Shown here: piece after piece, positions 1 to 44,894 of the stretch
Position numbering within the stretch: the stretch's first letter is position 1
Layout: each line of letters starts with the position of its first letter
NCBI GenBank assembly: GCA_002269645.1
Contig: NIVC01000201.1
Coordinates: 558,001 to 622,000, forward strand
Length of the DNA: 64,000 bases
Direction: 5' to 3'
DNA from: Macrostomum lignano
Lineage: Eukaryota
The notes under the pieces: generated by a model
Database searches by the model: none
The model's input: the letters and a program-made list of their open reading frames with translations, nothing else
What the model was told of the DNA's origin: nothing
Made by a program: the position numbers and the translations under genes

Positions 1-1628
1 ATTAAGCTGCTGTACTACCATTGGGAGATAAGCTGTAGAATTAAGCTTCTGTCTGCCGCACCAGTAGCCGCAGGTCACCACGCTGTTGGCTTTCAGGCGG
101 TCCGGTATCTCCACCACGGACAGGTACACAGGACAGATTTCCATGACGGAATGGCGGAATGCCTGTTGCAAATAAAATGAAGCTTCGAATTGTCCGACTG
201 TAATTAATTTGTCGCATCGTTTAACCATCCAGAACATGGGACAAAACTGCAACAAAGATGGCCCCCTTACTCGTACTTACCGGAAATCCGTCAATGCAAA
301 CAACGTAACTCAGGTCCTGTCGGGAGTCCAGAGAAATGGAACTCTTAAATTTGCAGTACCCTTCAGAAGAGCCGAGTCCAAGAAAACCAGGCTCGCACTT
401 CTGGTCTGCGGGGAATACGACTTTCTGAAGCAATCCTTCCGCTTCTATCTGCAACTGAAGCTGCTTACGGACGTCCATCTGCCAGTACGTGCAGATTTTG
501 TCCGGCGTCAGTGCAGCTGTGCAGTTTTCACAGACAGTGTCAGCTGTATCCACTCGAGCGAGGCACTTCAGGCAGAAATTGATACATTTGGGTTTCCGTC
601 GACGCACCCCTAAGGCCTGGCGCAACAGATGCTTCGACGTAGGGATGCACCCACCAGCAGGCAGAGTCTCGTCAATCAGAGCCAGGACAGCACGGACGAC
701 GCTACCATTTAAACCGTACCTGGTAGATGGATAGATAGATAGATAGATAGACAGATAGATAGACAGCACGGATGACACTACCATTTAAACCGCACCTGGT
801 CACAATTTTCTGCATTGCAACAGCAAAGCTCCCGTACGTATGTCCACTTCCTGGGCACACGGGATCATGCAGTCTCGGATGAGCTTCGTCATCGGAACTG
901 CTGCTGCTGCTGCTGCTGTTGTTGTTGTTGATGCCGGCCCCGCTGGGTCACCTGGTCAATGGGCCTGCGGGAACGGTCTGACTGCAACATGGCACAGCCA
1001 GCCGTCAATGCCCCGCTCACCATAGGACAGGGGCCTTGCACCACCGCGTCGCCGCGTGAGTGTGCAGAGGGCATGTCGGTGAGCCTGCCACCAGGTCCAC
1101 CAGGGTCAACCCCAGCAGAGGGGCCGGAATTCCAGCTTTCGTGTCCGTGGCCAACGGACCTTCCACCCCACGCCTGACAGTCCAGCACTGGCGGCCAGCC
1201 CCGATGGGGTCTAGCCAGTGTCTGGAGCTGCTCGGAGGCCTGCTGGATGTGAGGCTGCTGCTGCTGCTGTTATTATGGAGGTTTCCGTCGGACAAGGGTG
1301 CAGCCTCCTCGATATTTACGTCATCCTTGACGTCACCCCGATGGTCTCCGTCTCCATCATCATCCGACCATCCTGCCTCCTCTAACAGCACATCGGGGGA
1401 ATCCGTCTGCTCAACCTCCATGTGGACAGTCGGTTCAGCAGCACCGTGGTCTCCAACGGGGACAGCAGCCGCCCCATTATGGGCGTCCTGTCGCTGTTGA
1501 GCGAGACGCTCACGACGCCTTCGTTGTCTAAGTGCGTCACCACGACGCAACCGTCCTGTTGGGTCGGCATCAGCAGCTTCGCGCTCCCTGCGCCGATAGA
1601 CCTTTCGCTGGGCCGCCCTGTCAGCCAT
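1..1628 (-). CDS. CACTA/EnSpm (Transposase_21-type) transposase, N-terminal part, spliced; runs off the left edge
   Basis: Proposed exons 1628-1021, 942-796, 719-281, 162-<1, with GT-AG junctions that keep frame. Translation includes PVCPGSGHT, CxxC...CxxC (CLKC...CENC) and DGFPAFRHSVMEICPVYLSVVEIPDRLKANSVVTCGYWCG, resembling the DG(V/I)PxFKSS..WP(I/V)YL..ELP..R...N..LxGLWxG block of CACTA transposases. The 942 acceptor is the weakest junction. Confidence 0.8.
724..766 (+). repeat. (GATA)n/(GACA) microsatellite between two copies of a ~38-bp duplication
   Basis: Direct reading: tagatggatagatagatagatagatagacagatagatagacag, flanked by near-identical gacagcacgga(c/t)gac(g/a)ctaccatttaaaccg(t/c)acctgg copies. 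Confidence 0.95.
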
Positions 1629-2110
1629 AATAGCGCTGCAGACATTTTCGGACAAGTATTTTGTGATGAGGTGCGTGTTAAATAAATAGGCTACTACTCT
1701 AATCTGCCAGTGTTCGTACAACAAATACTAGCTACATTGACAGAAGGGTACGAAAATAATTGAGACGACGATACACGAGAATTCAAAAATCCAAATGCAG
1801 TCCAAAAACGTGCGTACACAGCTATCTGTATATACTTGCAATCTGACACTGGGAACCGAGAACCACTAGTACTTTGCGATCTTATACTGGGAACTAAGAA
1901 CCACTAGAACGTAGTTGAATCAGGATGTGGCACTCGTAATTGTTGCACATTTTTGAAGGCTAGCTTGTTTACGTGTGTACTCATACGATGTTGAAGCTTT
2001 AATTCCTGTTTAATCTACATCAGTCTAGTGGTCCTTGGTACAAACTGCCATATCACCCTGGCATCCACCGGCGTCACATACATATATACACTCATGAACG
2101 GAGGTAGCAG

Positions 2111-3113
2111 TTATTCCTCATTTGGAGTACATATTTGGAGTACGCTGTCTAGCAGGGCAGACCAGTTAATGGGATCCGGAGTTGGCTCGTCGTTGTTTGA
2201 AACAGTCTGGGCAAGGGTGAGGACCGGGTCGTTCACCTCGTCCACGTCGAAATCAGAAATCCCGCTGGTTAAATCCGAGGCTGTTAGAACGTCATCCAAC
2301 AGAGCAGACCAATTTATGTCACCACTCATTTCAATTTGCCAGCTGTAAGTCAAATATGCAGGTGACAAACATGTACAATAGCGTCAACGTTCGCTACATA
2401 TCGCTACACAAGGCTACACGACATACACCATACCAACCTCAGCAGGACCTCAACAAGATCTAAGCTGGGAACAGCCTAAACAGACGCTGCATCTACACAT
2501 GCGCACTTTTACGTGTACTTGCAGTAGAATGTTATTTAACCACACAAAAACTACACGACGATGGACGCCAACATACAAATTGTGTTTTAAACGTACATGT
2601 ACAAGTAGTTCGTTAACCCCGCTGTGGCATGCGCACTGGTGCAGGAGGGGGTGGGGAGGGGGGCGGAGACGGTGGAGGATTGCGACGATGCGGGAGCAGG
2701 GGCATTCTAAAAAAATCTTCGCCCAGTTCATCATCTTCTTCTTCCTCTCGATCCTCTTCTTCTGCTGCAGCTTGTCGCTGCCTTTGAAGCTCCAGCACCT
2801 CCTGCTGCCTCCGCACGCCTATCTGCTGGTACTCTAGTAGCTGTTGCTGTCGCTGCAACAGCCGCTGTTGCTCCTCGAGCAGCCGCTCTAATGCAGCAAG
2901 CCTGTCTTGCTGCTGCTGCATGCTGGGGTTCTCTACATTTAGTGGCTGTAGTAACTGCTGCTGCTGATGAAGGTTGACCTGCAGCTGCTCAACTACCAGC
3001 CGCTGTCGCTCCCCAAACTCTTCCCGCAGGTCCTCCAGATAAGGTATCACAACCTCCGGTGCCTCGTCCTCCATCACGTCCTCCTCTTCCTCCAGTTCAT
3101 TACGTGGATCCAT
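2111..3113 (-). CDS. Orphan acidic/Gln-rich coiled-coil protein, proposed 3 exons (248 aa), probably a cargo or accessory gene of the CACTA element
   Basis: Proposed exons 3113-2637, 2475-2438, 2342-2111. Donors CCA|GTGCGC and AG|GTTGGT, acceptors TTTAG and TTACAG; phases are compatible. The C-terminus carries INWSALLD twice. No family recognised. Confidence 0.45.
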
Positions 3114-3362
3114 GGGTACCTATATAGCTGCAAAAAGCAGCTGCACAGTAGTATTGTTGTCCTGATTACATGTCCCCCCACAAGAGGCTATACCAGACCA
3201 TTATTTATCAACTATTTGCAATCTAGCTGAGGAACTTCTCTCACTTCCCTAGTTAAATTGGTGTAGACGAATCAAGCAGCGGAATTACATGTACACATGC
3301 AACGAAGCCTTCGTACGTAGGATAAAATGAACAACGCAAGAAAAAAGTAACACCGATCAGGA

Positions 3363-3724
3363 TTAAAAAGCACCTCAAGTGCTGGCAGTTGCCAAACTGG
3401 CTAACTGTAGGTATAAAACATTTTGGAGCAAACAGCTCATTTCTAAGTTTGCATTAAAAAGCACCTCAAGTGCTGGCAGTTGCCAAACTGGCTAACTGTA
3501 GGTATAAAACATTTTGGAGCAAACAGCTCATTTCTAAGTTTGCATTAAAAAGCACCTCAAGTGCTGGCAGTTGCCAAACTGGCTAACTGTAGGTATAAAA
3601 CATTTTGGAGCAAACAGCTCATTTCTAAGTTTGCATTAAAAAGCACCTCAAGTGCTGGCAGTTGCCAAACTGGCTAACTGTAGGTATAAAACATTTTGGA
3701 GCAAACAGCTCATTTCTAAGTTTG
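3363..3724 (+). repeat. 91-bp tandem repeat, 4 near-identical copies
   Basis: The unit TTAAAAAGCACCTCAAGTGCTGGCAGTTGCC...TTCTAAGTTTGCA restarts at 3363, 3454, 3545 and 3636. Confidence 0.97.
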
Positions 3725-5131
3725 CGTTTAGTTTCTCTTGACATAAAAATTCTTCATACATCACACTGAAATTCAAACGGTACTACACTCTTCACCTCCG
3801 TGTAATATACATGTTCACCTACAGTCTACAAGTACATTTTAAAACGCACCAGAAAATCACAACAGATCAGACACCTAAAATAATTGCTAACGGAATGACA
3901 ATGTATTTGGGAAGCAAATAGAAGTTATTAATCTTCTCTGCAACACGCTTCCTGCACCGTACAAACCGTAGTCCAGTTAATTGAATGTAGGCGTCGGCAT
4001 TCGACCAGTGACAGTTGGAACAGACCCCGCCGCTGAACAATAGCTGCAAAAGTGAGCAAAAAGGCTTTTTAGAAAGCAATATACACTCCGTTTTAGCCTA
4101 CTGAACTCTAATTGCACTAACTAGCCTACTGAGTTAGTAGAAAGTTTAGCGCTAGTACAACGATTCTTAGACGATTTTTTCGCGACTCTTTTACGCTTCT
4201 ACAACTCACGTGACGCGCTTGTGATGCAAGAGTCACTTCTCCGTCGCATTTGACGCGTTTGAGTCGTTAAAAAGTCACAAGAGTCGCCCCAGACGCGCTA
4301 GAGTCACTAGAGAGTTGTTTGCAACGACTTTTTAGCGACTCTTGTCACGGTATCGTTTTCAACGGGCAGTCTAGAAGTTATTGGGTTCAGCTGTCAAAAA
4401 AACTAATTTTGGTCGAGTTCGAGAGGCACACGGGCTGTTTTAAAAATGAAGCGATGTGGTCAGAAATTAGTAGAACAAGTTAGTCATCCACAGTTTTAGC
4501 CAGTGGACTCTGCACCAAAATTATATTTGCTTGCTAAGCAATTTCAATAATGATATGCAATAAGTAAGTGGATTTGGCATTTCAAATTCATCTGATTTAT
4601 ATAGTGGCTATAAATGAAGTAAAAACAGACAAGAGCGCAAATGTACTCTTATTTACACAGACAAATTGCGGTAAAATTATATCAGCAACAATGTACATGC
4701 CGCAAAAACTAATATTAATTGGAATTGTGAGAAAGTCGGGCGAGTCTGTAAATATTGGTGAGGCATAAAATACCGCTTCGCTGATACTGCTAGTGGGAGG
4801 AATGTCTTGCAGTGTACAAAAAATCTAAAAAAGCCTGTATTTTTAGTGCTTGCGGTATGTAAAAAACTGTTGTACACGTATTCTTGTATAAGAAATATAT
4901 TCCACTTATGTACACAGGCTTTGGCGCAGTCGGGCATCCGCTTTGAAATTGAGCCAAATATTACCCTTACAACAGATTTGCCGCGTACTCCTCTCTCAAC
5001 GAAATGCTATCCGTGGGTGTGCAATACATTTGCATCACATGCAAGTAAACGCGGATTGCACCAATGTCCATGTTTGAACTATAAAGTCACATTACTTGTA
5101 CACGCTATCTGGAAGCTGGCAGAATTGGTAA

Positions 5132-6190
5132 TTACTGATGCTTCTTCATGTGCAGCGCCAGGTGGTCGGAGCGGGAGAACGCCCGACCGCACAGGCTGCA
5201 CGGGAACGGCCGGTCACCGGTGTGCTTCCGGTAGTGCCGGGTCAGCTCGTCCGACCGGGCGAAGCGCCAGCCGCAGCCGGGCCAGCCGCACAGGTACGGC
5301 TTTTCACCTGTGTGCGTCCGCAGGTGAGCCTTCAGGTGCGAACTCTTGCTGTAGGCCTTGGCACAGCTGGGCTCCGGGCAGATGTGCAGCTGCGGCTGCT
5401 GCTGCTGCTGAGTGCGCCTACCGGATGCCGTCGGCGTGGACTTCGGCTGTCTGGGTCTTCGGCACTGCTGCTGCTGTTGCTGCGGCTTCCGCTGCTGTTT
5501 CTGCTTCTCCTGCAGCCGAAGAATTTCCTCAGCCTGCTGGGTGCTTGGAGCGAACAGAGACACCGTGGCAGCCGCAGTCACCGAGGTCCGGCCGTTGATG
5601 ATGCACGTGCCGCTGGCTGGCTGGTGCTGGAACATGTAGCCAAACTGACGCTGCTGCTGCTGCTGCTGCGATTTCGACACCGAAGCTGCCGTTTGCTGCA
5701 CAGAGTGGTCGATGATGAAGTCCAGGTCCAGCAGGCTCAGGTCTGAGCTGTCCATTGAGCTCCTGTGCTCATCGTCATCGCAGTCTTCCGCTTTGACAGC
5801 TGAGAGCCAAGCCGCGGCTGAGTCTAGTTGAAAATTCTGGCAGCTGTGAGACAGCACACTGTCGCTGGCCGAGGCATCCAGGCCGCTGTGAACGGAGCCG
5901 GTGGACTCCGGACTGTGCCGGGAGCTGCCTCCGCTGAAGTAGTTCTCCAGAGATGACAGCGGTGACTGGGGCAGCTGCAAGTTCAAAAACAGTTCGGAAG
6001 AAGGCTAGTTAAAGTGGAAAGATCGTTGCCGATCAATCAAGTCACGTGTCACACTGCACGGCTATCAATTACTTACCGTTGTCGACGATCGACAATCGAA
6101 ATCGAACCAATCCGCGAATCCGTCGATGTCGCTGACGGTGACATTGGTCGCAGTTGGTGCTTCAACAGACTGACAGGCATCTAGTAGCAT
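5132..6190 (-). CDS. klf: Kruppel-like factor, KLF1/2/4 group (328 aa)
   Basis: Exons 6190-6077 and 6004-5132 (72-nt GTAAGT...CTAG intron, phase 0). Three C-terminal C2H2 fingers: [71 protein letters not shown]. Confidence 0.97.
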
Positions 6191-6330
6191 TGTTCCAGGC
6201 TGACTGTTGGGTAAATCAATTGCCGTGACGCTCTGGCGATAAGGACGATCAGTAGAGTAGAAGTCGAAGACAATTTGGCGAGAATTGCTAGCGAGAGCTT
6301 TGCCTCGGCTATCAGAGCAGAGCTCGGCTG

Positions 6331-6453
6331 TTTTATGCAGAGCTCGCGCCCTGCTCCCATTGGCCAGCCGGGCTCGCCTGAGCCGTCGGCATTGCCAAAT
6401 ATGGCTCGGCCCGGGCTGACAAAGTGTGCTATTTTTAGAATCAGTATATAAGC
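6331..6453 (-). promoter_or_regulatory. klf proximal promoter module: GCTTATATAC, MEF2 site, CArG box, CCAAT, TATA-like
   Basis: On the minus strand: GCTTATATAC (6453-6444), CTAAAAATAG (MEF2 consensus, 6438-6429), CCATATTTGG (CArG, 6404-6395), CCAAT (6363-6359), CATAAAA (6337-6331). A second perfect MEF2 site, CTAAATTTAG, lies at 7162-7171. Confidence 0.7.
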
Positions 6454-7374
6454 TCTGCTCCGGCAGAGGGGGGAGCAGAGTGAGGCAGACGGAGCAGAGG
6501 GGACGGAGCGTGAGAGAGAGAGGGGCGCTCCTGCAGTGCATGCAGTGTTTGTAAATGTCAATGAAAGCCTGTTCGTGCCGAGTTTACCGAGACGGCATTC
6601 GTTTTAACACTGGACTGGGTAGAGAAAAGTGCGCCAGAAACTGCCATTTGTTTCAGCTGAGCTTTTAAAGCAAAAAGTGAATTTATTTGCAGCAATCAAA
6701 CAATGCTCAGTGCTAAAAATGTAGCACACTTTCCCACAGTCCACTTTTGCGTTACTTTTGTCCTGAGTTCTTCAATGTTCCAAAGCGTCAATGCAAAATG
6801 ATTTCAATTTCTAATTGTTTTCAAAAAAGTTTCCATCTAAATATTCACCAAGAAATACTTGAGCAGTGCAAGTGCAACCTTTTACAGTCGCGATAAATTT
6901 GCGTAGATATGCTATGGAAGAAGCAAAACGAATATAGATATGATTTCTTACCTTATTTCAACGCCGGGCCTCAGTGCCTGAGCTGGTTTCTGAGCGTACC
7001 AAATGCCAGCAATGCGCAGCAATGAGATAACGCTCCGTTTCGATGCAATTGGACGCAATTCTCAAGGAAAGCCTGTGGGAACGAGAGAGTTAGGCCCCGG
7101 GCGGGCACGTGCCCAGCGCTCGCAAGCACTCACGTACGCTGCTGGAATGCAAGTTTTGTTTCTAAATTTAGCCCTAATTCTTGTCTAGCGCACAATGGCC
7201 TACATGGAGTCGCTTGTGTCGCGGTTATAACTGAATTCTGTGCTAAGATTTCGGCGAGATCGGTCACAATTGGCTACTCTCAGTAGGTGTGAGAGAGTAA
7301 GAAATCATCTGTATATTTGACGGGTTTTAGCACATTCGATCTTCATGAAATTCTGCAAGTCAATGTCGATCACC

Positions 7375-7850
7375 CCTCTCTCTCTTTCTCTATCTGCCTC
7401 ATCCGCCACCCTTCACTGTATCCGCGTTAGTTCTGCATTCACCATGAATTCATCGCCTTCCTTCACTGCCTTCTCTGCCTTCCTTCACTGCCACCCTTCA
7501 CCGCTTTCTCCACCTCCCTTCACTGCCAACCTACACTGTCTTATCCGCCTCCCTTCATTGCCTTCGCCGCTTCCCTTCACTCCCACCCTTCACTGCTACT
7601 CTTCACTGTCTTCTCCAAATCCCTTCACTCCCACCCTTCACTGCTACTCTTCACTGTCTTCTCCAAATCCCTTCACTCCCACCTTTCACTTCCTTCTCTG
7701 CCTCCCTTCTCCGTCTCCCTTCACTGCCTTCTCCGCCTCCCTTCACTGCCTTCTCCGCCTCCCTTCACTGCCACCCTGCATTGCTTTCTCCACTTCCCTT
7801 CACTGCCTTCTCCGCCTCTCTTCACTGTCATCTCTGCATTTCTTCCTTTG
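7375..7850 (+). repeat. Degenerate CT-rich minisatellite built on CCTTCACTGC
   Basis: Recurrent ccttcactg(c)/ttctccgcct motifs, including two exact ~45-bp copies at about 7570-7680. Confidence 0.85.
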
Positions 7851-9161
7851 AGCAGCTCCTTCAAATTCCGGACCTGCCTTCAGTTCACTTCGTTCACAAA
7901 TCAATTTTAGGCAGCAAAAACCAAGGGAGCTATTCTATACGGCAAGCCAGTTATTTGATTAATTCCTCAAGTTGTTTTCCACGTATAATTTCTTGCCAGG
8001 TAATTTTTTCATGAAACAACATCGAGTCATCAAATTATGAAAATGTCAGGCAAAATCAAGTTTCACTTTCTTAAGCAGCAAAACAAGTCAAGAAAAATAC
8101 ATAGCGTAGAAATCTGCGATAAAAATGAACTAATAATAGACATCTCAATTAAAAATCATGTGACAAAAAGCAGCAAGCAGGAGCAACACAGGAAATTCAG
8201 GCAACACACAGAACAGGACAGCTGATGAACATCAAAATCAGGGCATAAAGTTCTCGTGGCTAACAAATATTTAATGCCACATTACGATTGCCATACGGTA
8301 CGAACAGTGCAGCGTTGCGACAGATATCGAATTTCTGCTAATTAATAAAAAGTAACAAAGCAGAGAAACAGACGGCGCTACAAAGACCCAGCAAAAACTT
8401 TCGAGGCTCGGAGACGCGAACGAACTGTTTGAACTAAGAAGCAATTTGGAGAACACGCATTCGACAACGCAAACGACAGGCATAGCGCCAAGGTCCGACG
8501 CGGTGCAAGCGGTTTCAAATGGTTGCAAAAAACAGAAAGCAGAAAAACAACAGACAGCAAAGAAATTTTGTCCATTTGTGTTGCTTGAAAAAGCATTTCA
8601 CAAAACCGATATTTTTGGCGATCAAGCGTCAACAGAATCCTGTCAATCGTTCGCAATACCGACTTCAATTGGAGCGTTTGATCTGTCAGGCTTTGATTTC
8701 TTTCGAGCAGACGCCAGGTCAAGTAAAAAAGGTTCACATTTTTGTTGCTTTTTTGCTTTTTTGCTTTTTTCTTTGCCTTACGTCGTATTTTGCATATTTG
8801 CCGCAATAGGAACTCGCCGAAGACCGCAACGACGGGCAGAAAAGAATCAGATTATTGTTCAAAATTTTCCTTGTAACAAATGACTGCTTTTTATTTTTTC
8901 TGCGCGGGTGCTGAAAAGATCTGTGGCGAACTTTTTCTGTTCGTTTTTTGCTGCTTCAGTTTTTTTCGTTCTTTGCATCGCCGTAAATTTTTTTGCCGGC
9001 CTCGGAGCCGCAGCCGGCGCGAGAGGCGAAGACGCTGCAGATTTTCTTCAGGCTTTTCGGATGAGCCAATGAGGAATCCCGGATTGGAGCAACGGTCAAA
9101 ATCGTATTGAAGGCCTGGTCAGGGTTTCGTTTTGCAAAATGAATTCCAGGCAGAATGACTC

Positions 9162-10579
9162 TCAAGACTCGAGCAGGTTGATGAGCGGCAACTGGGAGAA
9201 GTCGTTGCCAGGATGTCGCTGGTGGAAGCGGAGGAGCTCGCGGTCGCAGAGCAGCCTCGCACCGCTGACGGAGGCCCTGATGGCCAGGCACTCGTACGAC
9301 AGGTCGGGCAGCGGGCTGTTCGGGTCGGCCGACATCTCCACGATTTTCCTCACCAGCTGGTCGTGATCCACCTGTGTGAGAGAGAGATTGGCACGCGATG
9401 TTGCATGCGTTCATTTAAAGAATTCCTCCCCGAGTCTCCGAGCCAGCGAACGTAAAAATTAGCTCGGAAAAAGTGCGTGGGTGGAGTTTTGATTTGCGTC
9501 AGCAACTGCGGCTGTGCACCCCTGTGCTATCTGTTGAGCGACCTCTGGGCGCCAGGTGCAGTTATCGTGAAGTCTCGCTTGAAAAGCGCTGATTACTAGC
9601 ATTTTCTGTCTGTCCGCACCCCCCCCCCCTAATGCACTCTTTCATTCAAGCAGGTCGCTGCGTTATCAAACACATGACGCTTTTGCTTCACCTGCAGATC
9701 TTGTTTCGCCAATTCGAAATCTTGAAATCTTGTCAATTTGAATACCGAAACCCACTGAGTAACCCGCAGCTCACCTTGATCATGCGAACTCCGTTCTCGC
9801 AGCAGGCGGACACCAGCAGGGAGAAGAAGGCCCTGTGCAGCGGGTTGTTCCACAGATTCTCGGGCAGGATGCAGAACAGCAATGACTGCGGGCTGAAATT
9901 GGTAGCAGGTTCAACCAGATTAAGGCAATGAAGTTTGATGTCAGGATGATTGCAATAAATTTAGGTTTAAGTTCACAAGCATCCGGTCCAAGGTTTGCAT
10001 CGATTTTTTAATCGTCATCAAATCCTGATAGAGTCCGAAGTGACCCCGACCAAATCTGGTTGAAACTTGCAATCAAAGTCCTGATAGGTTCTGTCAGGAT
10101 TCTATAGTCTATTGCCGAATGATAAACCAAGTGGTGTCGAACACCAGTTCAGGTTCTCATTGAGGTTGCTCAGATTGATGGAGTTTGCAACCGGGTATCA
10201 AAGCGAGTACCAGAGCCAGATGATTGTGAACATCTACCCAATCATGTAGGCGCAAACTTACTCGTTCTGAACGGCGTCGATGACGTGCTTGAAGCCGCCG
10301 ATCAAGCGGCCGTCCAAGTTGGCCCGCGCGAGACTCTGCTGCATGAACGCGTTGACGTCGCTTGAGTGAGCCACGCCGTCGTTCACCATCGAGCTGCAGA
10401 GCATTTGAAAGCGAACTCGAATATTAAATTCAGTTCGAGCTTGCATTTAAAAAGCTCTCCTAATAATCGGTGTCGCGGGACTTTTACCTCGCTACAAATG
10501 GTGGCACTTACCCAGATCTGTCGGGCCACAGGTAGAACATGTTGCTGGCTGTATCCGCGCCGCCGGCGGCCTCGCCCAT
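9162..10579 (-). CDS. gadd45: GADD45 family protein (L7Ae/L30e/S12e/Gadd45 fold), about 175 aa
   Basis: Exons 10579-10512, 10393-10262, 9892-9775, 9371-9162, all GT-AG and in frame. ...VQNDPQSLLFCILPE...FFSLLVSACCENGVRMIKV...PLINLLES parallels GADD45 NVDPDNVVLCLL...FTLIQAFCCENDINILRV...PVINLPER. The start codon is uncertain (in-frame ATGs at 10630, 10579, 10540). Confidence 0.9.
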
Positions 10580-11060
10580 AAGATTGAGTCCGGAGAACGA
10601 TACGCAGCGGATGAATCGGCTGAGCCTCATGCAAGATTGGCGTTGCAGTCGGTTCAATGCTAGCAATAGTCTGCCGCTAATGCTAAGCTTGCGAACTTCT
10701 CGATTAGCCAAAGCTTCTCCGTGTCTTCGAGCAGAGATGATGAGCTGGCAAGGCTTGTTTAGTTTTGTTAAGGTTTGCAGGAACTTGACTCGTTAAGAAG
10801 CGACCCACCGGGAGCAGGTGGGCGTCTTTATTTAGTCGCACAGTTCTCGGACTTTCCATGGCAACACGCAGCGACTGCGCGTACACTGCCGGGCCTGGGG
10901 TGGTGGCGGAGGGACAGCGGAGAGCGGCCCTCGCTAGGACGAGATTTTAATCTGGGGGGGGGGGTTGCAATAGGGAGAGAAAATACTCTGGATGTGAGTG
11001 GGGGTGGGTGGGTTTGAATTTCTCTCTCTCCCCTAAAGCTTAATGTACATTTTGCAGTGC

Positions 11061-11509
11061 TGACGTGGGCAATACGTTGCAGCGCTGATTCTCTCAGCTC
11101 TGTGTCCCTGGCCCGGACATCAGGGGGGGGGGGGTGAGGCTTATCTGTAAACTGGAGCCTGGTGTACATTTATCTGCAAGTCTGATCCGTCCACGCTGTC
11201 TCGCTGAGCGTTTCAGTCAGTAGACATTGTGCGCTCTAAATTAGGAAAATACGTATCTAGCAAGTCATAACTTGCTTCTTCTGCTTCTACTGCTTGCTTT
11301 TCTAGCAAAATGTTTACGGCAGTTAGTGAACTGCACTGCACTTGGGCTTGAGTTTGCGGCGTACACCGGCCCCAGACACAGACTTTTAGCTGGATTACGC
11401 CTCGCTGGAGGAAAATGAGTCACCCACAGGCTGCCGCTGCCAGTGTACGCGACTGAGTACTAGCAAGGCAGCAGCCCGAGCCATTGAGCAGTTCCTGAGC
11501 GATGAGTCA
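11061..11509. promoter_or_regulatory. Stress-response motif cluster upstream of gadd45 (ATF/CRE-like, FOXO, two AP-1)
   Basis: TGACGTGG at 11061-11068, TGTTTAC at 11311-11317, TGAGTCA at 11416-11422 and ATGAGTCAT at 11502-11510. These are motif matches only. Confidence 0.4.
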
Positions 11510-12869
11510 TCACTAGCTCTAAATAGTGCAGGCAAGGTCGCAGGGAAAGAGGAATGTCTACGTGCACGCGGATATCAGGCATGCCAGATCCGTTTGAGGT
11601 CAAATATTTTGGCCAATTTGTGCTTTAAGCAGCACCCTTCCCCTGTTCTTAGCGCTTTTTTCTGTCTTTCTCGCGCCACGCTCAATTTCCTGAACGAACA
11701 CAAGCGCACCACTCGATGCTTAATGCTCGTAGCCGAAAGTTCACATTTCTGGTTTAATAAACAAGCAGCATTGTTTTTGTTATTCCGCTGTTTTATGTTT
11801 TTCATTATTATTCAATGTGGCTACCTTTTGAAGATTGGCCCCTTGACTATAGTTAAGATATTAAGGATGTTTAAGAGAGTTTAAAAGTGTTTAAATGTCG
11901 TTTAACAATGTCCCCGATGTTGTTCGGATTTTAACAACTTGATGACTTAACTCGAGTGAGCTTTGATGGAACTTATCAAGTGTACCCTATGTCACAACAA
12001 AATTAAACTAATCATCTGAGTTTCACACGGGACTCAATAGAGGACATAACAGTTCTCAATGCCCTCATTCCGATTGAAAGCCACTAGGCTGACCCACCCG
12101 GATATGAGTCCATCTGCATCCGCGTTTGAGTGAACTTTTTGGGGCTTCATATCGAGTGGACATAGCAGGCGCCACTGTTGCTCATACAAAGCGGTCAAAT
12201 ATTTACCTAAGAAGGTTCGTGTACTGAGCTGAGCACGGTACGAGCCCAAGTATACTCAAAGTCCTTGGCTGATCCCAGCTTCCGTACAAGCAGGATATTC
12301 GAGTTCTGACGGACTTCCATTGTATTGACTTTTAAAATTGATCTGCTGAATGGCACTCCGAACTCAAGTTGCTGCTTCCTTTTCCACAAATAATTTTACA
12401 ATCATATAAAAGCGTGAGCAGGACCGCAGAAACTTGCAGAATTCAATCGGGCCCTGGGAAAATAACAACAAGAGCGAGCGAGCGTAACAGTGTAGACAAA
12501 AGCGGTGTAAACCCGACTCCGTCACTGACTTCTAAATTAGGCAATATGCGCGTAAAATTTTACTTTTGCTCGATTCCATATATGGAAGTGGACAGCTGAT
12601 GCTAAAAATAGCATTGAAAACAAAACAAGTCTCGAGATATCTGACGCCGCTAACTACATTCTAAGCATGGCGAGAACTTCGCTTCGCTTTACTTTATTTT
12701 CGACCGAAAGTAGACGAAATATGTCTGAGTTTTCACAGCATTGAGAAATGCGACTTCATTTTAAATTGATACGAATTTTCAATGTCAGAAATTAGGTAGG
12801 CTCTGGGATAAAATTATGTTTTAGGCAGTTTTGATTATAGGAAACGTTAGCTCAACAACATTATGGTAG

Positions 12870-20200: not shown

Positions 20201-23200
20201 AGAGAGTTCCAGTTTGGAAGTGGATGATGAAGAGAGTTCCAGTTCGGAAGTGGGGGATGAAGAGAGTTCCAGTTCGGAAGTGGGTGTTGCAGAGAGTTCC
20301 AATTCGGAAGTGGGGGATGAAGAGAGTTCCAGTTCGGAAGTGGGTGTTGCAGAGAGTTCCAATTCGGAAGTGGATGATGAAGAGAGTTCCAGTTTGGAAG
20401 TGGATGATGAAGAGAGTTCCAGTTCGGAAGTGGGGGATGAAGAGAGTTCCAGTTCGGAAGTGGGGGATGAAGAGAGTTCCAGTTTGGAAGTGGAGGATTC
20501 GGCAACACATTCAGGAAACGTTCGGGAAACATAGGATGAGGAGAGTTCCGATTGGGAAGTTGGAAAGAAAAGAGAGTTCCAGATGGGAAGTGAAGTCAAA
20601 TTATAATTGCAAGGAAATCCACCCAAAATCATGAAAAAATTGAAGTCTAATATGTATATACATACATACTAGTACATAGAAAATTTGAGATTTATTTATA
20701 TAGATTTCTAATCAATTTTCGACAATAATGTTTGGGCAAAAAAGTTCTGAGGAAGAGAGGATTGAGTAGAGGAGAGAGGCGAACGCGCGAGTGAGTGATC
20801 TGGAAGCGCATCGTTACGAAAAATATCAGCAATAGAAAAACGAAAAAAAGAGCACATCGAGCACAGAAATTGCTCTGTCCTGTGAAAGACATCTGAGCAG
20901 CTTCAGATTTACTACAGTATTCAGCTTCTGCTCTGGAACTGGAATGCCAGGGACACCTAGAGAGACAGAATCTGGAATGGAATGCCAGGGACTCCTAGAG
21001 AGACAGAGCATCTGGAACGGAATACCAGGGACTCCTAGAGAGACAGAGCATCTGGAACGGAATACCAGGGACTCCTAGAGAGACAGAGCATCTGGAACAG
21101 AATACCAGGGACTCCTAGAGAGACAGAGCATCTGGAACAGAATGCCAGGGACTCCTAGAGAGACAGAGCATCTGGAACGGAATACCAGGGACTCCTAGAG
21201 AGACAGAGCATCTGGAACAGAATGCCAGGGACTCCTAGAGAGACAGAGCATCTGGAACAGAATGCCAGGGACTCCTAGAGAGACAGAGCATCTGGAACGG
21301 AATACCAGGGACTCCTAGAGAGACAGAGCATCTGGAACAGAATACCAGGGACTCCTAGAGAGACAGAGCATCTGGAACAGAATACCAGGGACTCCTAGAG
21401 AGACAGAGCATCTGGAACGGAATACCAGGGACTCCTAGAGACAGAGCATCTGGAACAAAATGCCAGGGACTCCTAGAGAGACAGAGCATCTGGAACGGAA
21501 TACCAGGGACTCCTAGAGACAGAGAATCTGGAACGGAATGCCAGGGACTCCTAGAGACAGAGAATCTGGAACGGGATACCAGGGACTCCTAGAGACAGAG
21601 CATCTGGAACGGACTGCCAGGGACTCCTAGAGAGACAGAGCATCTGGAACGGAATACCAGGGACTCCTAGAGACAGAGCATCTGGAACGGAATGCCAGGG
21701 ACTCCTAGAGAGACAGAGCATCTGGAACGGAATGCCAGGGACTCCTAGAGAGACAGAGCATCTGGAACGGAATGCCAGGGACTCCTAGAGAGACAGTCTA
21801 GAACAGAATACCAGGGACTCCTATAGATACAAAGCATCTGGAATGGAATTAAAGGGCTAATTAGATAAGAATACTGTTATTTCCAGGAGTTGGAAAAGCA
21901 GAAAAGCTTGAAATCAGCAGGAGAAAAAAGAGCACATCGAGCACAGAAATTGCTCTCTCCTGGGAGAAACATTTGAGCAGCTGCAGATTCGCTATATGAT
22001 TATTCGAGTTGCCGGGAGTAAAATCCCCCGTTCTGCTTCTGTCCCAGCCAGGGCAAGGGGCATATCGATCCTTTTCAGAACCAGAAAAAGTCTGGGCCTG
22101 GTCGATTAAGAGACTTCAGGTCTTCCCTGCCGCTGTGAGCTCCTGCCGGACCCAATTCTCGTCTCGGTAATGTTGGCCATCCTTTTCGCTGCAATATTAA
22201 GTACTAGTGCAGTAGTAGCGCGGGGCTTAAGGCAGGACTGAGTTCCATTAAATTCCGAGCTGAGTAATTAAAAGGATTACATGTAATTACTACTTGAGCA
22301 GATCTTTGTAGATCAGGGAGTGAGTAGTGGCATCAGGGAGGGAGTAGTGGCATCAGGGAGGGAGTGGTGGCATCAGGGAGGGAGTAGTGGCATCAGGGAG
22401 GGAGTAGTGGCATCAGGGAGGGAGTAGTGGCATCAGGGAGGGAGTAGTGGCATCAGGGAGGGAGTAGTGGCATCAGGGAGGCAGTAGTGGCATCAGGGAG
22501 GGAGTAGTGGCATCAGGGAGGGAGTAGTGGCATCAGGGAGGGAGTAGTGGCATCAGGGAGGGAGTAGTGGCATCAGGGAGGGAGTAGTGGCATCAGGGAG
22601 GCAGTAGTGGCATCAGGGAGGGAGTAGTGGCATCAGGGAGGCAGTAGTGGCATCAGGGAGGGAGTGGTGGCATCAGGGAGGCAGTAGTGGCATCATGGAG
22701 GGGGAGCTCTAGTCCATCTACAGGACACAATCCATGAAAGAGAGTCGCTTCGATTTCAGCTCAATGTCATTTGCAATCAGTTCACCAGCCCAGTTGTCAG
22801 CCCCCATTGCTCTCCTACGAGTAATCGGATTCGAGAGTCAGCCCAGCAGAGCAGACACTGGATAAGAGCGAGTCAACGTCAACGATCACAGTCAACTTAA
22901 ATTAACTCAATCAACTCCAGCTGTTTAGGGAAACAGCTTTGAGTCCAGCTGATTCGGTTAAAAACGTGATAAATCCAATGAATAATCCTAGGGTTAGATT
23001 GCGAGTACACGTGCAAAAGTACCCGTACACCTCAGGGGAAAGCCAGTACAGGGACAGCTAGAGAAACAGGGAATCGGGATGCCAAGGACTCCTAGACAAA
23101 CAAAGAATCTGGAACGGGATGACAAGGACTCCTAGAGAGACAGAGCATCTGGAACGGAATACCAGGGACTCCTAGAGAGACAGAGCATCTGGAACAGAAT

Positions 23201-26200
23201 ACCAGGGACTCCTAGAGAGACAGAGCATCTGGAACAGAATACCAGGGACTCCTAGAGAGACAGAGCATCTGGAACGGAATACCAGGGACTCCTAGAGAGA
23301 CAGAGCATCTGGAACGGACTGCCAGGGACTCCTGAGAGACAGAGCATCTGGAACAGAATGCCAGGGACTCCTAGAGAGACAGAGCATCTGGAACAGAATA
23401 CCAGGGACTCCTAGAGAGACAGAGCATCTGGAACGGAATACCAGGGACTCCTAGAGAGACAGAGCATCTGGAACAGAATACCAGGGACTCCTAGAGAGAC
23501 AGAGCATCTGGAACGGAATACCAGGGACTCCTAGAGAGACAGAGCATCTGGAACAGAATGCCAGGGACTCCTAGAGAGACAGAGCATCTGGAACAGAATA
23601 CCAGGGACTCCTAGAGAGACAGAGCATCTGGAACGGAATACCAGGGACTCCTAGAGAGACAGAGCATCTGGAACAGAATACCAGGGACTCCTAGAGAGAC
23701 AGAGCATCTGGAACAGAATACCAGGGACTCCTAGAGAGACAGAGCATCTGGAACGGAATACCAGGGACTCCTAGAGAGACAGAGCATCTGGAACAGAATA
23801 CCAGGGACTCCTAGAGAGACAGAGCATCTGGAACGGAATACCAGGGACTCCTAGAGAGACAGAGCATCTGGAACGGACTGCCAGGGACTCCTAGAGAGAC
23901 AGAGCATCTGGAACAGAATACCAGGGACTCCTAGAGAGACAGAGCATCTGGAACAGAATACCAGGGACTCCTAGAGAGACAGAGCATCTGGAAAGGAATA
24001 CCAGGGACTCCTAGAGAGACAGAGCATCTGGAACGGAATACCAGGGACTCCTAGAGAGACACAGCATCTGGAACGGAATACCAGGGACTCCTAGAGAGAC
24101 AGAGCATCTGGAACAGAATACCAGGGACTCCTAGAGAGACAGAGCATCTGGAACGGAATACCAGGGACTCCTAGAGAGACAGAGCATCTGGAACGGAATA
24201 CCAGGGACTCCTAGAGAGACAGAGCATCTGGAACAGAATACCAGGGACTCCTAGAGAGACAGAGCATCTGGAACAGAATACCAGGGACTCCTAGAGAGAC
24301 AGAGCATCTGGAACGGAATACCAGGGACTCCTAGAGAGACAGAGCATCTGGAACAGAATACCAGAAACTCCTAGAGAGACAGAGCATCTGGAACGGAATA
24401 CCAGGGACTCCTAGAGAGACAGAGCATCTGGAACGGACTGCCAGGGACTCCTAGAGAGACAGAGCATCTGGAACAGAATACCAGGGACTCCTAGAGAGAC
24501 AGAGCATCTGGAACAGAATACCAGGGACTCCTAGAGAGACAGAGCATCTGGAAAGGAATACCAGGGACTCCTAGAGAGACAGAGCATCTGGAACGGAATA
24601 CCAGGGACTCCTAGAGAGACACAGCATCTGGAACGGAATACCAGGGACTCCTAGAGAGACAGAGCATCTGGAACAGAATGCCAGGGACTCCTAGAGAGAC
24701 AGAGCATCTGGAACAGAATACCAGGGACTCCTAGAGAGACAGAGCATCTGGAACGGAATACCAGGGACTCCTAGAGAGACAGAGCATCTGGAAAGGAATA
24801 CCAGGGACTCCTAGAGAGACAGAGCATCTGGAACGGAATACTAGGGACTCCTAGAGAGACAGAGCATCTGGAACAGAATGCCAGGGACTCCTAGAGAGAC
24901 AGAGCATCTGGAACAGAATGCCAGGGACTCCTAGAGAGACAGAGCATCTGGAACAGAATACCAGGGACTCCTAGAGAGACAGAGCATCTGGAACGGAATA
25001 CCAGGGACTCCTAGAGAGACAGAGCATCTGGAACAGAATACCAGGGACTCCTAGAGAGACAGAGCATCTGGAACAGAATACCAGGGACTCCTAGAGAGAC
25101 AGAGCATCTGGAACGGAATACCAGGGACTCCTAGAGAGACAGAGCATCTGGAACAGAATACCAGGGACTCCTAGAGAGACAGAGCATCTGGAACGGAATA
25201 CCAGGGACTCCTAGAGAGACAGAGCATCTGGAACGGACTGCCAGGGACTCCTAGAGAGACAGAGCATCTGGAACAGAATACCAGGGACTCCTAGAGAGAC
25301 AGAGCATCTGGAACAGAATACCAGGGACTCCTAGAGAGACAGAGCATCTGGAAAGGAATACCAGGGACTCCTAGAGAGACAGAGCATCTGGAACGGAATA
25401 CCAGGGACTCCTAGAGAGACAGAGCATCTGGAACGGAATACCAGGGACTCCTAGAGAGACAGAGCATCTGGAACAGAATGCCAGGGACTCCTAGAGAGAC
25501 AGAGCATCTGGAACAGAATACCAGGGACTCCTAGAGAGACAGAGCATCTGGAACGGAATACCAGGGACTCCTAGAGAGACAGAGCATCTGGAACAGAATA
25601 CCAGGGACTCCTAGAGAGACAGAGCATCTGGAACGGAATACTAGGGACTCCTAGAGAGACAGAGCATCTGGAACAGAATGCCAGGGACTCCTAGAGAGAC
25701 AGAGCATCTGGAACAGAATGCCAGGGACTCCTAGAGAGACAGAGCCTCTGGAACGGATCCTAGGAACAGATCAGAATATTGCTATTTCTAGAAGTTGGAA
25801 ATTCAGGAAAGCTCGCTGCTGTTTCCAATCCAGAATCCTAGGTTTAGGCGTCCTAGTCTTAGTTGCTCTGCTAGACTCAGGGTTACCTCCTAACCGGGCA
25901 TCCGGGAAGCTCACAAATATATTTTCGCATTAAAATCCCACAGTTTAGCTGCCTCGCCAGCTTTTCTACAAGAGAAGAACAGCACAGCGCCCTGATTTAT
26001 GCCGCCTGCCGCAACCGGAGGCGGAACCGGAAGCAGGCGATCGAATCGGACGACTCACCTGGTCGTAAGTCTGATGTCGGAGGGTGCCGCTGGCCAGCCC
26101 GTCACTGACGGGGATCACCACACCCAGCATGGTGAGGCTGATACTGTACAGAATGATGAGGGAGCTCAGCACATGACGCCGTGGGCTGCCCGCACCTCCG

Positions 26201-29200
26201 TCCTCGGCGTCCTCACCGACACCGTCGGCAGCTGGCCCGAGCGGCTTCTCAATCAAGCAGTCGGAGCCGGGCCGGGCGCTGAGGTGTGGGGGGGGGGGTT
26301 TAATACGCCTGAAAAATGTACTACTCTGTAAACTGAATATCCTGCACATGACACACGTCAGTTGTTTAATAGCTTTGCAAATATTTATATTATTCAATTC
26401 GTTAAACTTCCCATTATTTCAACACCCCATTCCTTAGAAATCCCATTCCTTAGATATCCCATGCCTTAAGCATCCCATTCCGTAAACATCCCAAAAAGAC
26501 ATTGATAGGAGTCAGTTGCATATCAAGTATTGATATCAAGTCTCCGTGCTGATAGCCTAATTAACATCTCATTAAGGCATTTACAGCTACCAAGCAAGCT
26601 CAAGGGCTCGGCCTACTCGTATAAACAGTTTCAGAAACACCTGTCAGACAAATGGAATTGAGGATGAGGAAGCGAATCCCCAGGCAGACTGTGCCCCCCC
26701 CCCCCCAGCTAATCAATGCAGCCTGGCAGAGCGCGCTTTCCATTTGGCTCTCCGTCATTGAATTTTGGTGCGGCCCAGCCAAGCGTATGATGAGGAAGAG
26801 GCTGGGCCAGCGCCAGGTTCCCACGGTGCAGCCTCTTGAATGTTTCATGACTGCCCGCCCCCTTCACCGATCGGGCCGGGGCAGCTGCTGCTGTCCTTAA
26901 AAAAATTTGGGCGCCAAGCGGCGGATGCGGGGCGTCCAGCCAGCCTCTGAGCTGCATCGCGAGAGAGAGAGAGAGAGAGAGAGAAGCGCAGTCCGACAGC
27001 CAAGGTCTTTTGTCTCCGGTGTGAATGCCCCATGCATCCCATTGTGCTGGCCTGAGAGTTTCATGTTTCTCCACCTCTCCGCCTGTTTCCGTGGGCGCAC
27101 ACACACGACAGTCACAGAAGGTGCACACTGCGGAGTCTGAGCAGTGTGCTCAGGGCGCATGGCTGCTGGCCTTCTGGCTGGCTGCGGGCTGACTTTTGCG
27201 TGTGATCTATGCGCAGTCCGAAGTTCTGCGGGGTCAAAGTGCACCCAAGGACTTCTAGACTAGCTAGTCTAGAAGTCCTTGAGTGCACCCCCTCCAGTCT
27301 GAGCTAACTCGAACGAGCAAGTCCTGGGGTGCAGTCTGTGTGCTTCCCACTCGCATTCCGGGTGGCACGAGAGCAAATCTAATTGAGATGCTTCGAATCT
27401 TGCGGCCCCAACAGTTTGTTTTATCTTTGCCGTTGCGAGAGTTGCAGATCTCTCTGGCGCACAAGCTCACTTGGCTCGGAGTAGACAGGCTCAGATGAAG
27501 GATCGATGGAGGCTGGCATTCAGCTTTAGCATTCAGCCAGCACTGCCGATTCTCCCAGCCATTCCCCAGATTGACTGCCTGTGTGCTCGGCACTTCAAGG
27601 ACTTGGGGCAGGCCGCGCGGATTAAAGTAGGGATTTCAGTTCCGCAGCCTGGGATTTTATGACGCTGAGGAAATCGGGAACAGAAGCGGTTTCGAAGGAG
27701 GGTTTGGAGCAGAGTGGCGCCGAAACCGTTCTCTTATGACATATGGTTACCGGGCTCGAATCCCGATGCGGCGAAATTTCAATTTAGGTTAGATAAAAAA
27801 CCATGGCGTGTCAAGGATTGCCAGTTTAGGAGTGAGGGTTGCCACTCTGAGAGTGAGGGTTGCCACTTTAACAACCAGGAGCCCCTTAAAAGAGCTAATC
27901 ATCAGCCATCGGGAGTTCGGTTTGAATCAGTTTAGCTCCACATCAATCTGTAGGCATCAAAGCCAGCAAGTTGGCTTTGTCGGCTTGCTTTTTGACCGGC
28001 AGCGACTGATCGATCAGCCACCTGAAAGCCAATCAAGCAACTGCCTGCTTTAATCAGCCTGTCGTCAGGCAGTGCACACAGGAAACTGTTGAATTGCACG
28101 CGACAGTCTGAATTTTAATTGAATTGCCTATTAAACACGAAAGCAGGCAAAAATTCTGATTTGCTTGGATCACTAACATGGAAAGGCATCACACATCTGT
28201 ATGATGACCGTGCCTGACTGGAGATAACCCTGCTTAGTACTCAATGCCCCCCCCCAATAACCGGCAAGACCCTGTCTGACAATAAATGACCCCCAATTAC
28301 CCAAAATGACCGGCAATGACTCTGTCTAACACCAAATGACCCCCAATGACCGGCAATGACCCTATCTGACACCACATGATCTCCAACGACCGACAATGAC
28401 CCTGTCTAACACTCAATGACCCTGTCTAACACTAAATGACCCCAGTGACCGGCAATGACCCTGTCTAACACCAAATGACCCCCAGTGACCGACAATGACT
28501 CTGTCTAACACCAAATGACCCCAGTGACCGGTAATGACCCCGTCTAACACCAAATGACCCAAAATGACCGGCAATGACCCTGTCTAACACCAAATGACCC
28601 CCAGTGACCGACAATGACCCTGTCTAACACTAAATGACCCCAGTGACCGACAATGACCCTGTCTAACACCAAATGACCCCAGTGACCGGCAATGACCCTG
28701 TCTAACACCAAATGACCCCAGTGACCGGCAATGACTCTGTCTAACACCAAATGACCCCTAATGACCGACAATGGCCCTATCTGACACCACATGATCTCCA
28801 ACGACCGACAATGACCCTGTCTAACACTAAATGACCCCAGTGACCGACAATGACCCTGTCTAACACCAAATGACCCCAGTGACCGGCAATGACCCTGTCT
28901 AACACCAAATGACCCCTAATGACCGACAATGGCCCTATCTGACACCACATGATCTCCAACGACCGACAATGACTCTGTCTAACACCAAATGACCCAAAAT
29001 GACCGGCAATGACCCTATCTAACACCGAATGACCCCAATGACCGGCAATGATTCTATCTAACACCAAATGACCCAAAATGACCGACAATGACTCTGTCTA
29101 ACACCAAATGACCCCAGTGACCGGCAATAACTCTGTCTAACATCAAATGACCCAAAATGACCGGCAATGACCCTATCTAACACTAACTGATCCCCAACGA

Positions 29201-29625
29201 CCGAAAATGACCCTATCTAAGACCAAATGACCCAAAATGACCGGAAATGACCCTATCTAACACCAAATGACCCAAAATGACCGGCAATGACCCTATCTAA
29301 CACCAAATGACCCAAAATGACCGGCAATGACCCTATCTAACACCAACTGATCCCCAATGACCGGCAATGACCCTATCTAACACTAACTGATCCCCAACGA
29401 CCGACAATGACCCTATCTAAGACCAAATGACCCAAAATGACCGGCAATGACCCTATCTAACACCAAATAACCCAAAATGACCGGCAATGACCCTATCTAA
29501 CACCAACTGATCCCCAAGACTCAAATGTCTAGCAAGCAACTCCCAGTTGAATCAGAGAAAAGCTCAACTCACAGTCTGTCATTCAAGTCGGACTCAGCAG
29601 GCGCCAGCTCCTGCGGCAGCGTCAT
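14225..29625 (-). CDS. otop: Otopetrin family proton channel (701 aa)
   Basis: Exons 29625-29573, 26278-26059, 18508-18232, 17601-17392, 16897-16737, 16302-16086, 15727-15334, 14798-14225 (2106 nt, phases consistent). Motifs: FYLYMH, LYLRLGAIIFGFG, FALAHLVVTNLCIW, SPFLYPCAVEYGLI, CHKSHKGLFFG, PMIIFFRFHSTVCLSEIWK. Exon 1 and the two GTGC donors are less certain. Confidence 0.93.
16375..16497 (+). repeat. Short array of the same 32-bp family as 12870-13678
   Basis: Units read gggttagtgacgtcactccatcaaaggacagg. Confidence 0.85.
17790..18047 (-). mobile_element. tRNA-derived SINE with a CORE (MIR-like) domain, in otopetrin intron 3
   Basis: On the minus strand: A box TAGCCTAGTGG (18039-18029), B box GGTTCGATTC (17995-17986), then GTGTCCTTGAGCAAGACGCTTAACTCT...TTCACCCATCTGTAAAATGGG, resembling the CORE consensus CCTTGGGCAAGTCACTTAAC...CTCATCTGTAAAATGGG. 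The 3' end is approximate. Confidence 0.85.
18582..19050 (+). repeat. 20-bp minisatellite (CCTGTCTCTTGGTGGGCGCC)
   Basis: Direct periodicity; it generates several spurious ORFs. Confidence 0.97.
19985..20585 (+). repeat. 30-bp minisatellite (GAGAGTTCCAGTTCGGAAGTGGGGGATGAA)
   Basis: Direct periodicity, about 17-20 copies with degenerate ends. Confidence 0.97.
20935..21845 (+). repeat. 40-bp minisatellite, array 1 (CCAGGGACTCCTAGAGAGACAGAGCATCTGGAACAGAATA)
   Basis: Direct periodicity, about 22 copies. Confidence 0.98.
22320..22700 (+). repeat. 20-bp minisatellite (GGAGTAGTGGCATCAGGGAG)
   Basis: Exact 20-bp periodicity, about 19 copies. Confidence 0.98.
23065..25757 (+). repeat. 40-bp minisatellite, array 2 (same unit as array 1), about 67 copies
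   Basis: Direct periodicity. Confidence 0.98.
28245..29515 (+). repeat. 39-40-bp minisatellite (CCAAATGACCCCAGTGACCGGCAATGACCCTGTCTAACA)
   Basis: Direct periodicity, with a gradient of variant units along the array. Confidence 0.97.
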
Positions 29626-33725: not shown

Positions 33726-33841
33726 ACAGACAGACAGACAGACAGACAGAAAGACAGGCAGACAGACAGACAGACGGGGAGACAGACAGCCAGACAGACA
33801 GACACGGACAGACAGCCAGACAGACAGACAGACAGACACTA

Positions 33842-33888
<47 letters not shown>

Positions 33889-33917
33889 AAGACAGGCAGA
33901 CAGACAGACAGACGGGG

Positions 33918-33960
<43 letters not shown>

Positions 33961-34047
33961 AAGACAGGCAGACAGACAGACAGACGGGGAGACAGACAGC
34001 CAGACAGACAGACACGGACAGACAGCCAGACAGACAGACAGACACTA

Positions 34048-34102
<55 letters not shown>

Positions 34103-34111
34103 AAGACAGGC

Positions 34112-34143
<32 letters not shown>

Positions 34144-34210
34144 GGGCGAACAGACAGACAGACGGACGGACAGACAGAGAGACGGGGAGACAGAAAGACA
34201 GGCAGACAGA
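33726..34210 (+). repeat. (GACA)n microsatellite with an internal ~200-bp duplication
   Basis: Direct reading; the ACTAAG interruption recurs at about 33838 and 34044. Confidence 0.97.

Positions 34211-36179: not shown

Positions 36180-44894
<8,715 letters not shown>

Follow-up and report, generated by a model that had tools for sequence, protein, structure and literature searches.

The locus described here raises the question of whether a 76-nt GT...AG segment inside a transposon gene is a spliceosomal intron whose splice sites came from a tandem duplication of coding sequence, and whether the birth of that intron or the displacement of an older one has been captured. The segment lies near one end of the stretch of Macrostomum lignano DNA that was analysed (hereafter the window; 64,000 nt, positions 558001-622000 of contig NIVC01000201.1, assembly GCA_002269645.1). 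The rest of the gene was read from locus L004 on the same contig, which is 100% identical to window 12000..1 and adds 4.9 kb past the window edge. The analysis suggests, with a probability of about 0.6, that the 76-nt segment (i2) is a genuine short spliceosomal intron of a Tnp2/CACTA-like transposon gene and that its splice sites derive from a duplicated AG|GT.

The results of the repeat finders showed that a 39-nt coding stretch is present as two direct copies (Table 1), which are identical at 36 of 39 positions (92%), are spaced 76 nt from start to start and differ at the position pairs 697/773, 701/777 and 717/793. On the sense strand the unit reads ACCAG|GT(G/A)CGGTTTAAATGGTAG(T/C)GTC(A/G)TCCGTGCTGTC. 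The repeat is far beyond chance: blastn against the whole 64-kb window gave E = 6.5e-10, and its local alignment score was reached by none of 2000 shuffles. Between the copies, TRF reported a (TAGA)10 tract at 724-763, which is (TATC/TCTA)n on the sense strand. The original prediction had described a coding duplication of ~38 bp around a (TCTA)n tract, and such a duplication, of 39 nt, is indeed there.

Read on the minus strand, the sequence runs ..GTGACCAG(796)|GT(795-794)GCGG...CTACCAG(720)|G(719)TACGG. ACCAG|GT is present in both copies and contains the sole AGGT within the 39-nt unit, and the stretch from the GT of copy 1 (795-794) to the AG of copy 2 (721-720) is a GT...AG segment of exactly one period. 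Both consequences foreseen for the reading frame were borne out. When the 76 nt are kept, the frame runs through ..QKIVTRCGLNGSVIRAVYLSVYLSIYLSIYQVRFKW to a stop, the TAG that follows ..VTRCGLNGSVIRAVYLSVYLSIYLSIYQVRFKW; when 795..720 is removed, the frame continues as ..AMQKIVTR|YGLNGSVVRAVLALIDE.. and stays open to 281, so that pairing GT 795 with AG 720 recovers the predicted ..IVTR|YGLNGSVVRAV. The joined sequence across the putative junction 796/719 is the k-mer ATTGTGACCAGGTACGGTTTAAATGG. The microsatellite had further been expected to supply a pyrimidine-rich stretch, and the final 22 nt ahead of the AG of the putative acceptor (720) are 73% pyrimidine. Since AGGT is found in 10% of all 39-mers in the window, the geometry of the splice sites alone is not rare. 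The sequence shows that a coding 39-nt stretch with an AG|GT was duplicated, that a (TCTA)n tract fills the space between the copies and that one period is bracketed by the upstream copy's GT and the downstream copy's AG; in the mechanism proposed here, the spliceosome would use these two sites. We infer that the element bore i2 while still under selection.

Table 1. Features of the transposase-like gene in the window (all on the minus strand; coordinates are plus-strand window positions)
Feature	Position	Strand	Remarks
Exon 1 of transposase-like gene	1021..1628	-	ATG at 1628-1626 (MADRAAQRK...)
Putative intron i1	943..1020	-	78 nt; GTGAGC..CCCAG; three in-frame stops; GC 0.64; lineage-specific
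Exon 2	796..942	-	..SSSSDDEAHPRLHDPVCPGSGHTYGSFAVAMQKIVT-R
Copy 1 of duplicated coding segment	762..800	-	ACCAG|GTGCGGTTTAAATGGTAGTGTCATCCGTGCTGTC; first 5 nt are the end of exon 2, other 34 nt open the putative intron i2 and supply the GT donor (795-794)
Putative intron i2	720..795	-	76 nt; contig positions 558720-558795; cag|GTGCGG...CTACCAG|g; phase 2; GC 0.41
Microsatellite filler between copies	725..761	-	(TCTA)n / (TATC)n; pyrimidine-rich on the sense strand; from repeat finders
Copy 2 of duplicated segment	686..724	-	ACCAG|GTACGG...CTGTC; first 5 nt end the putative intron i2 (AG 721-720), rest encodes YGLNGSVVRAV, the start of exon 3
Exon 3	281..719	-	YGLNGSVVRAVLALIDE...VVCIDGFP
Intron i3	163..280	-	118 nt; GTAAGT..AACAG; position and phase equal those of intron 2 of the annotated sister gene P0271
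Exon 4, start	1..162	-	AFRHSVMEICPVYLSVVEIPDRLK...; gene runs past the window edge to a stop ~3.4 kb further (L004)

The host had been called a transposase, and this assignment was upheld by its remote relatives. A Pfam search gave no match for the window protein or for its relatives P0271, P0127, P0123, P0124 and P0126, and word-indexed homology searches with the 233-aa window protein and with an alignment of 8 sequences were likewise without matches; an exhaustive HMMER search found 255 relatives of the window protein, indicating that the empty word-indexed searches reflect a limit of the tool. The closest relative, P0121, is an M. lignano protein 90% identical over 150 residues within a chimeric gene model of 3511 aa. 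The multi-copy M. lignano family Mlig001703 (P0122/P0271) comes second at 47-48% identity, with copies g3, g4, g9, g12 and g17 on different contigs, and after it Mlig033474 (P0127) at 35%. Remote relatives from a springtail, a mussel, a hydrozoan and insects match Pfam Transposase_21 (Tnp2/CACTA, PF02992), DUF1258 and DUF4218; those matching PF02992 share 21-27% identity, and some lie near or just under the PF02992 cut-off. Transitive homology and copy number thus support a multi-copy Tnp2/CACTA-like transposase, although no profile matches the protein directly. The gene resembles the Tnp2/CACTA (EnSpm) transposases of PF02992 in the domains matched by its remote relatives and in being multi-copy in M. 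lignano, and differs from them in that the window protein and its close relatives fall below every Pfam threshold. No second copy of the exact family, with which the insert could be compared, came from the word-indexed searches or from a metagenome scan for ACCAGGTRCGGTTTAAATGGTAG, which gave no match. Two candidates for a comparison allele were set aside: P0121, because upstream of ..SVVRAVL its chimeric model has no reliable relation to this locus, and the paralogous locus L001, where the element is absent.

The structure of the whole gene was built with P0271 as a guide. In L004 the transposase-like gene extends from an ATG at 14563 (window 1628) to a stop near 19590. Removal of six GT-AG segments (78, 76, 118, 82, 86 and 100 nt) and one LINE insertion leaves an unbroken ORF of 961 codons with no stop in 2883 nt of reconstructed coding sequence. 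The 961-aa product aligns end to end with P0271 (46.8% identity over 765 residues) and keeps the conserved C-terminus of the family. The nested LINE fragment (L004 16957-18554; 1.6 kb, ~770-2360 nt beyond window position 1) lies in sense orientation on the gene's strand and is a 5′-truncated non-LTR retroelement with RNase H and zf-RVT domains, an internal frameshift and a (GAA)n tail. It is inserted within an exon, between ..RSLRDL and GHLRGHE, with a target duplication of about ACCTTG, and with this fragment in a downstream exon the present gene copy is broken. Every interruption of the ORF besides the LINE is a clean GT-AG segment of similar size (76-118 nt). The RNA-seq-guided annotation calls no gene on this element, though sister families are called.

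The original prediction had treated the insert as a secondary addition within the transposase, and the comparison with relatives agreed. In alignment A1, six relatives (34-48% identity) cross ..QKIVTR|YGLNGS.. without a gap, with the flanks anchored by HxYGSF and TLP, indicating that single-copy coding sequence is the ancestral state and the 76-nt insert is derived. Excision of the 76 nt returns the ancestral protein sequence, as judged from the frame, the gapless alignment with the six relatives and the 961-aa ORF. Copy 2 is coding and aligns with the relatives. P0121 has ..SVVRAVL and so agrees with the exonic copy 2, implying that at least one of the three substitutions fell in the putatively intronic copy 1. 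CpG-to-TpG/CpA changes in copy 1 account for two of the three differences; CpG observed/expected is 0.72. If the 39-nt copies and the ORF are assumed to have evolved neutrally for equal time, the joint probability of finding three differences in the 39 nt and no stop in the 2883 nt is ~0.03 at best, an argument for age that is weakened because two of the three substitutions are CpG transitions. The earlier claim that the three substitutions show persistence is open to doubt: the 3/39 differences are real and the joint probability is low, but as evidence they are weak.

Comparison of introns across the family showed no introns in the metagenomic relatives P0126 and P0123, which are single uninterrupted ORFs, two in P0127 at other positions, five in the annotated sister family P0271 (84, 106, 79, 97 and 91 nt) and six putative ones (76-118 nt) in the present gene. 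In the pairwise alignment with P0271, three introns, DGFP^A, A^VNPDL and H^V, are common to both genes at the exact column and phase, whereas two further positions belong to the present gene alone and one to P0271 alone. These counts (0, 2, 5 and 6) and positions suggest that introns have been gained within Macrostomum in this clade and that their positions turn over quickly. When L002, L003, L005 and L006 are set beside L004, the counts run from 0 (the two metagenomic relatives) through 2 (Mlig033474) and 5 (Mlig001703) to 6 (the present gene), and the two closest families have only three positions in common, a turnover unusually fast for a transposon gene. The putative i2 matches the other ten introns of the two genes in size, GC content and splice signals. 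Its length of 76 nt compares with 78-118 nt in the other five of this gene and 79-106 nt in P0271; its GC content of 0.41 compares with 0.35-0.45 in nine of the other ten and with 0.575 in exons; its pyrimidine fraction is 0.73, against 0.50-0.91 in the other ten; and its donor, cag|GTGCGG, is similar to the aag|GTGCTG of P0271 intron 5. Only i2 resembles its own downstream exon (31/34 in register, vs 2-13/34 in the others). No sequence likeness was detectable between orthologous introns of this gene and P0271. The putative intron i1 stands apart in GC content (0.64, vs 0.35-0.45 in the other introns), has a length that is a multiple of 3 and is absent from the sister family; a degenerate duplication signature sought within it was not significant (p ~0.06-0.12; 6/34 in register).

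The surrounding DNA is rich in repeats. Repeats make up more than half of the M. lignano genome, simple and tandem ones 15%, and RNA-seq guided the annotation (PMC5730564); the species is a hidden polyploid (PMC10468722). The paralogous locus L001 (NIVC01000891.1) is ~92% identical across window 9000..4385 and is without everything from ~4385 to 1, indicating that the segment bearing the element is specific to one of the duplicated loci; beyond the break, collinearity with the window is not resumed within the L001 sequence compared. Next to the collinearity break, at window 4143-4356, lies a repeat of ~200 nt (..GGGGCGACTCTTGTGACTTTTTAACGACTCAAAC..) that is also found at ~36700-36940, in an intron of a MARK gene, and at L001 16760-16946, and is probably a small dispersed element. 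The interval from the break to the transposase gene contains a perfect tandem repeat of 4 x 91 nt (window 3362-3725; 100% matches), which stands just upstream of a glutamine-rich, coiled-coil-like ORF of 166 aa with no Pfam match (2613-3113); the repeats and the ORF may be subterminal repeats and a second gene of the same element. An ORF for a KLF-type zinc finger at 5132-5986 is 95% identical to an M. lignano protein. In the MARK/Par-1-like kinase gene (window 36180-40300, minus strand) several introns are largely minisatellite, namely 39190..38935 (21-nt unit x10), whose repeat unit itself starts with GGTAG and ends with CAG, 38305..37575 (21-nt unit x30) and 40270..39865 (28-nt unit x6). 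Very long mini- and microsatellite arrays occur at 20932-25757, 28414-29517, 30308-31067, 33726-34210 and 42877-43903; they include a 40-nt unit x67, (ACAG)120 and a (TCAG)n-like array of ~1 kb, and illustrate how prone this genome is to tandem duplication.

In such a genome the 76-nt duplication with its microsatellite might be one of many tandem-repeat mutations, carried unspliced in an already silent copy, with the GT...AG a coincidence; the segment would then be an ordinary lesion in a dead transposon copy. The 15% share of tandem and simple repeats (PMC5730564) and the 53 TRF rows given by the window alone make such an event easy to imagine, as do the second, undoubted lesion in an otherwise clean ORF (the LINE fragment), the missing gene call and the frequency of AGGT among 39-mers. 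This reading nevertheless seems rather unlikely, given that it needs several coincidences at once: an AGGT in register (0.10), pyrimidine richness on the sense strand (0.5) and a size that falls within the 76-118 nt of the gene's introns. The copy differences taken together with 961 codons free of stops also speak against it, as does the finding that all interruptions of the ORF other than the LINE are clean GT-AG introns. The five other GT-AG introns of 78-118 nt and the clean 961-codon ORF left after removal make a real intron the likely reading of i2.

Two further explanations concern the origin of the extra DNA. An introner-like or other mobile element could have brought in the 37-nt tract, with the 39-nt repeat as its target-site duplication; the inserted segment is flanked by direct repeats as this requires, but it is pure microsatellite, without terminal repeats or other features of an element, and we consider such an insertion very improbable. 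A target duplication of 39 nt is far longer than those known from transposons. An introner-like origin was set aside in particular, as it predicts many near-identical intron copies and no intron of this gene recurs elsewhere in the window and L001-L004, although these ~130 kb are a small sample, far too small to decide the matter. Alternatively, the duplication might have been introduced by long-read assembly: the assembly that includes this contig is PacBio-based and the genome very repetitive (PMC5730564), and the length of the microsatellite in particular may be inexact. That explanation is scarcely credible, since a collapse or stutter error would not yield copies that differ at three positions with a defined tract between them.

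If i2 is taken as an intron, it may be newly born or it may be an older intron displaced by 5 nt through the duplication, and the odds between the two are about even. ACCAG and GTRCGG are contiguous in both copies, showing that the template that was duplicated had no intron at AG|GT, a point on which the model of the original prediction depends. No intron is found at the i2 site in P0127, P0126 or P0123. In P0271 an annotated 84-nt intron lies at K196|T197 in phase 0, whereas i2 is in phase 2, within the R codon, and 5 nt further downstream; the P0271 intron falls at phase 0 of alignment column 264, the first base of the duplicated unit (the ACC of the conserved "TR"), and hence at the edge of that unit. 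On an intron-less state the relatives give a divided answer: three have no intron here, but the sister family has an intron 5 nt away. The view of the insert as a snapshot of intron birth stands in part, as its anatomy is what the AGGT tandem-duplication model predicts, but an older intron is possible.

It is on balance somewhat unlikely that an intron between the V/K and T codons was already present in the ancestor shared with the Mlig001703 family and that i2 is its remodelled form. The opening 39 nt of the downstream exon may have been copied to a place directly after the upstream exon, which would have moved the splice sites downstream by 5 nt. Such a step might be an abortive loss of the intron mediated by cDNA, or a duplication that spanned an intron-exon boundary, like that in potato RdRp, after which the old part was lost; the microsatellite would be a remnant of the old intron. 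Such a history is favoured by the exact coincidence of the P0271 intron with the 5′ edge of the duplicated unit, as a random breakpoint would fall on one of the five P0271 intron positions with a chance of only ~5/2883. Three of the other four P0271 introns are exactly common to the present gene, which makes a fourth shared ancestral intron plausible, and a new intron arising from duplication of an intron-exon boundary is documented in potato (PMC4974935). Against this, several steps are needed, and the old acceptor must have been lost, because no AG stands directly upstream of copy 2 (..CCATCT|ACCAG). Homology of the microsatellite with the P0271 intron lacks a basis for comparison, as orthologous introns share no detectable sequence; the more distant relatives are intron-less here; and with such fast turnover of positions in the clade two independent gains at a favoured site are possible. 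A broader form of this reading is doubtful: the clade would have gone from no introns in the metagenomic relatives to two, five and six short lineage-specific ones in Macrostomum, and intron sliding would be captured in the 76-nt segment, a V|T intron having been replaced 5 nt downstream through duplication of the start of the downstream exon, in a family gaining introns unusually fast. As intron positions in this family differ between close lineages, copies from across the genome could place the intron-less state, the duplicated state and the state with an older intron 5 nt upstream in order.

Whether i2 is a birth or a replacement, its anatomy can be set beside three known routes to new introns. 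In Daphnia populations, Li et al. in 2009 reportedly found introns gained through double-strand-break repair, with short flanking direct repeats and with parallel gains at the same site. The M. lignano insert is similar to that system in being filler DNA flanked by a direct repeat of its target, and the sister family's intron, 5 nt away, could be accounted for by parallel gain where the site is favoured; the Daphnia repeats, by contrast, are reportedly much shorter than 39 nt.

The AGGT tandem-duplication model for how introns are gained reportedly goes back to Rogers in 1989. The M. lignano locus is like this model, and like the vertebrate ATP2A1 intron, in the tandem duplication of an exonic segment with AG|GT, in the bracketing of one period by the upstream copy's GT and the downstream copy's AG, and in an excision that leaves the peptide unchanged. 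It departs from both in the microsatellite filler between the copies, so that it is not a pure duplication, and in the sister family's intron 5 nt away. The model received experimental support from Hellsten et al. (2011), who found that a reconstructed ATP2A duplication was spliced at 6-16% in human cells (PMC3265369). The gain of the ATP2A1 intron is inferred to be more than 420 My old, and the minimum length quoted in that work is ~60 nt (PMC3265369), which the 76-nt segment exceeds. Whereas the ATP2A1 event has that great age and its host is a conserved cellular gene, in M. lignano the two repeats retain 92% identity, a transposon copy is the host and i2 is a putative intron.

In potato, RdRp gained an intron when a tandem duplication spanned one of its intron-exon boundaries (Ma, Lan and Niu, 2016; PMC4974935). 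There, as in the putative intron here, a recent duplication is still recognisable, the upstream copy provides the donor from a piece that used to be exonic, and what lies ahead of the downstream copy provides the 3′ signals. The potato gene differs in that it has kept the old intron next to the new one and in that its splicing was detected, whereas in M. lignano the upstream exon abuts copy 1 and no old intron is present. It is very rare that the mechanism of a recent intron gain is still legible, and the tandem-duplication model is built on a handful of cases (PMC3265369; PMC4974935). Beside these, the 76-nt insert is a new candidate example of an already known mechanism and, if its splicing is confirmed, would add a case from an animal with copies that have kept 92% identity to each other.
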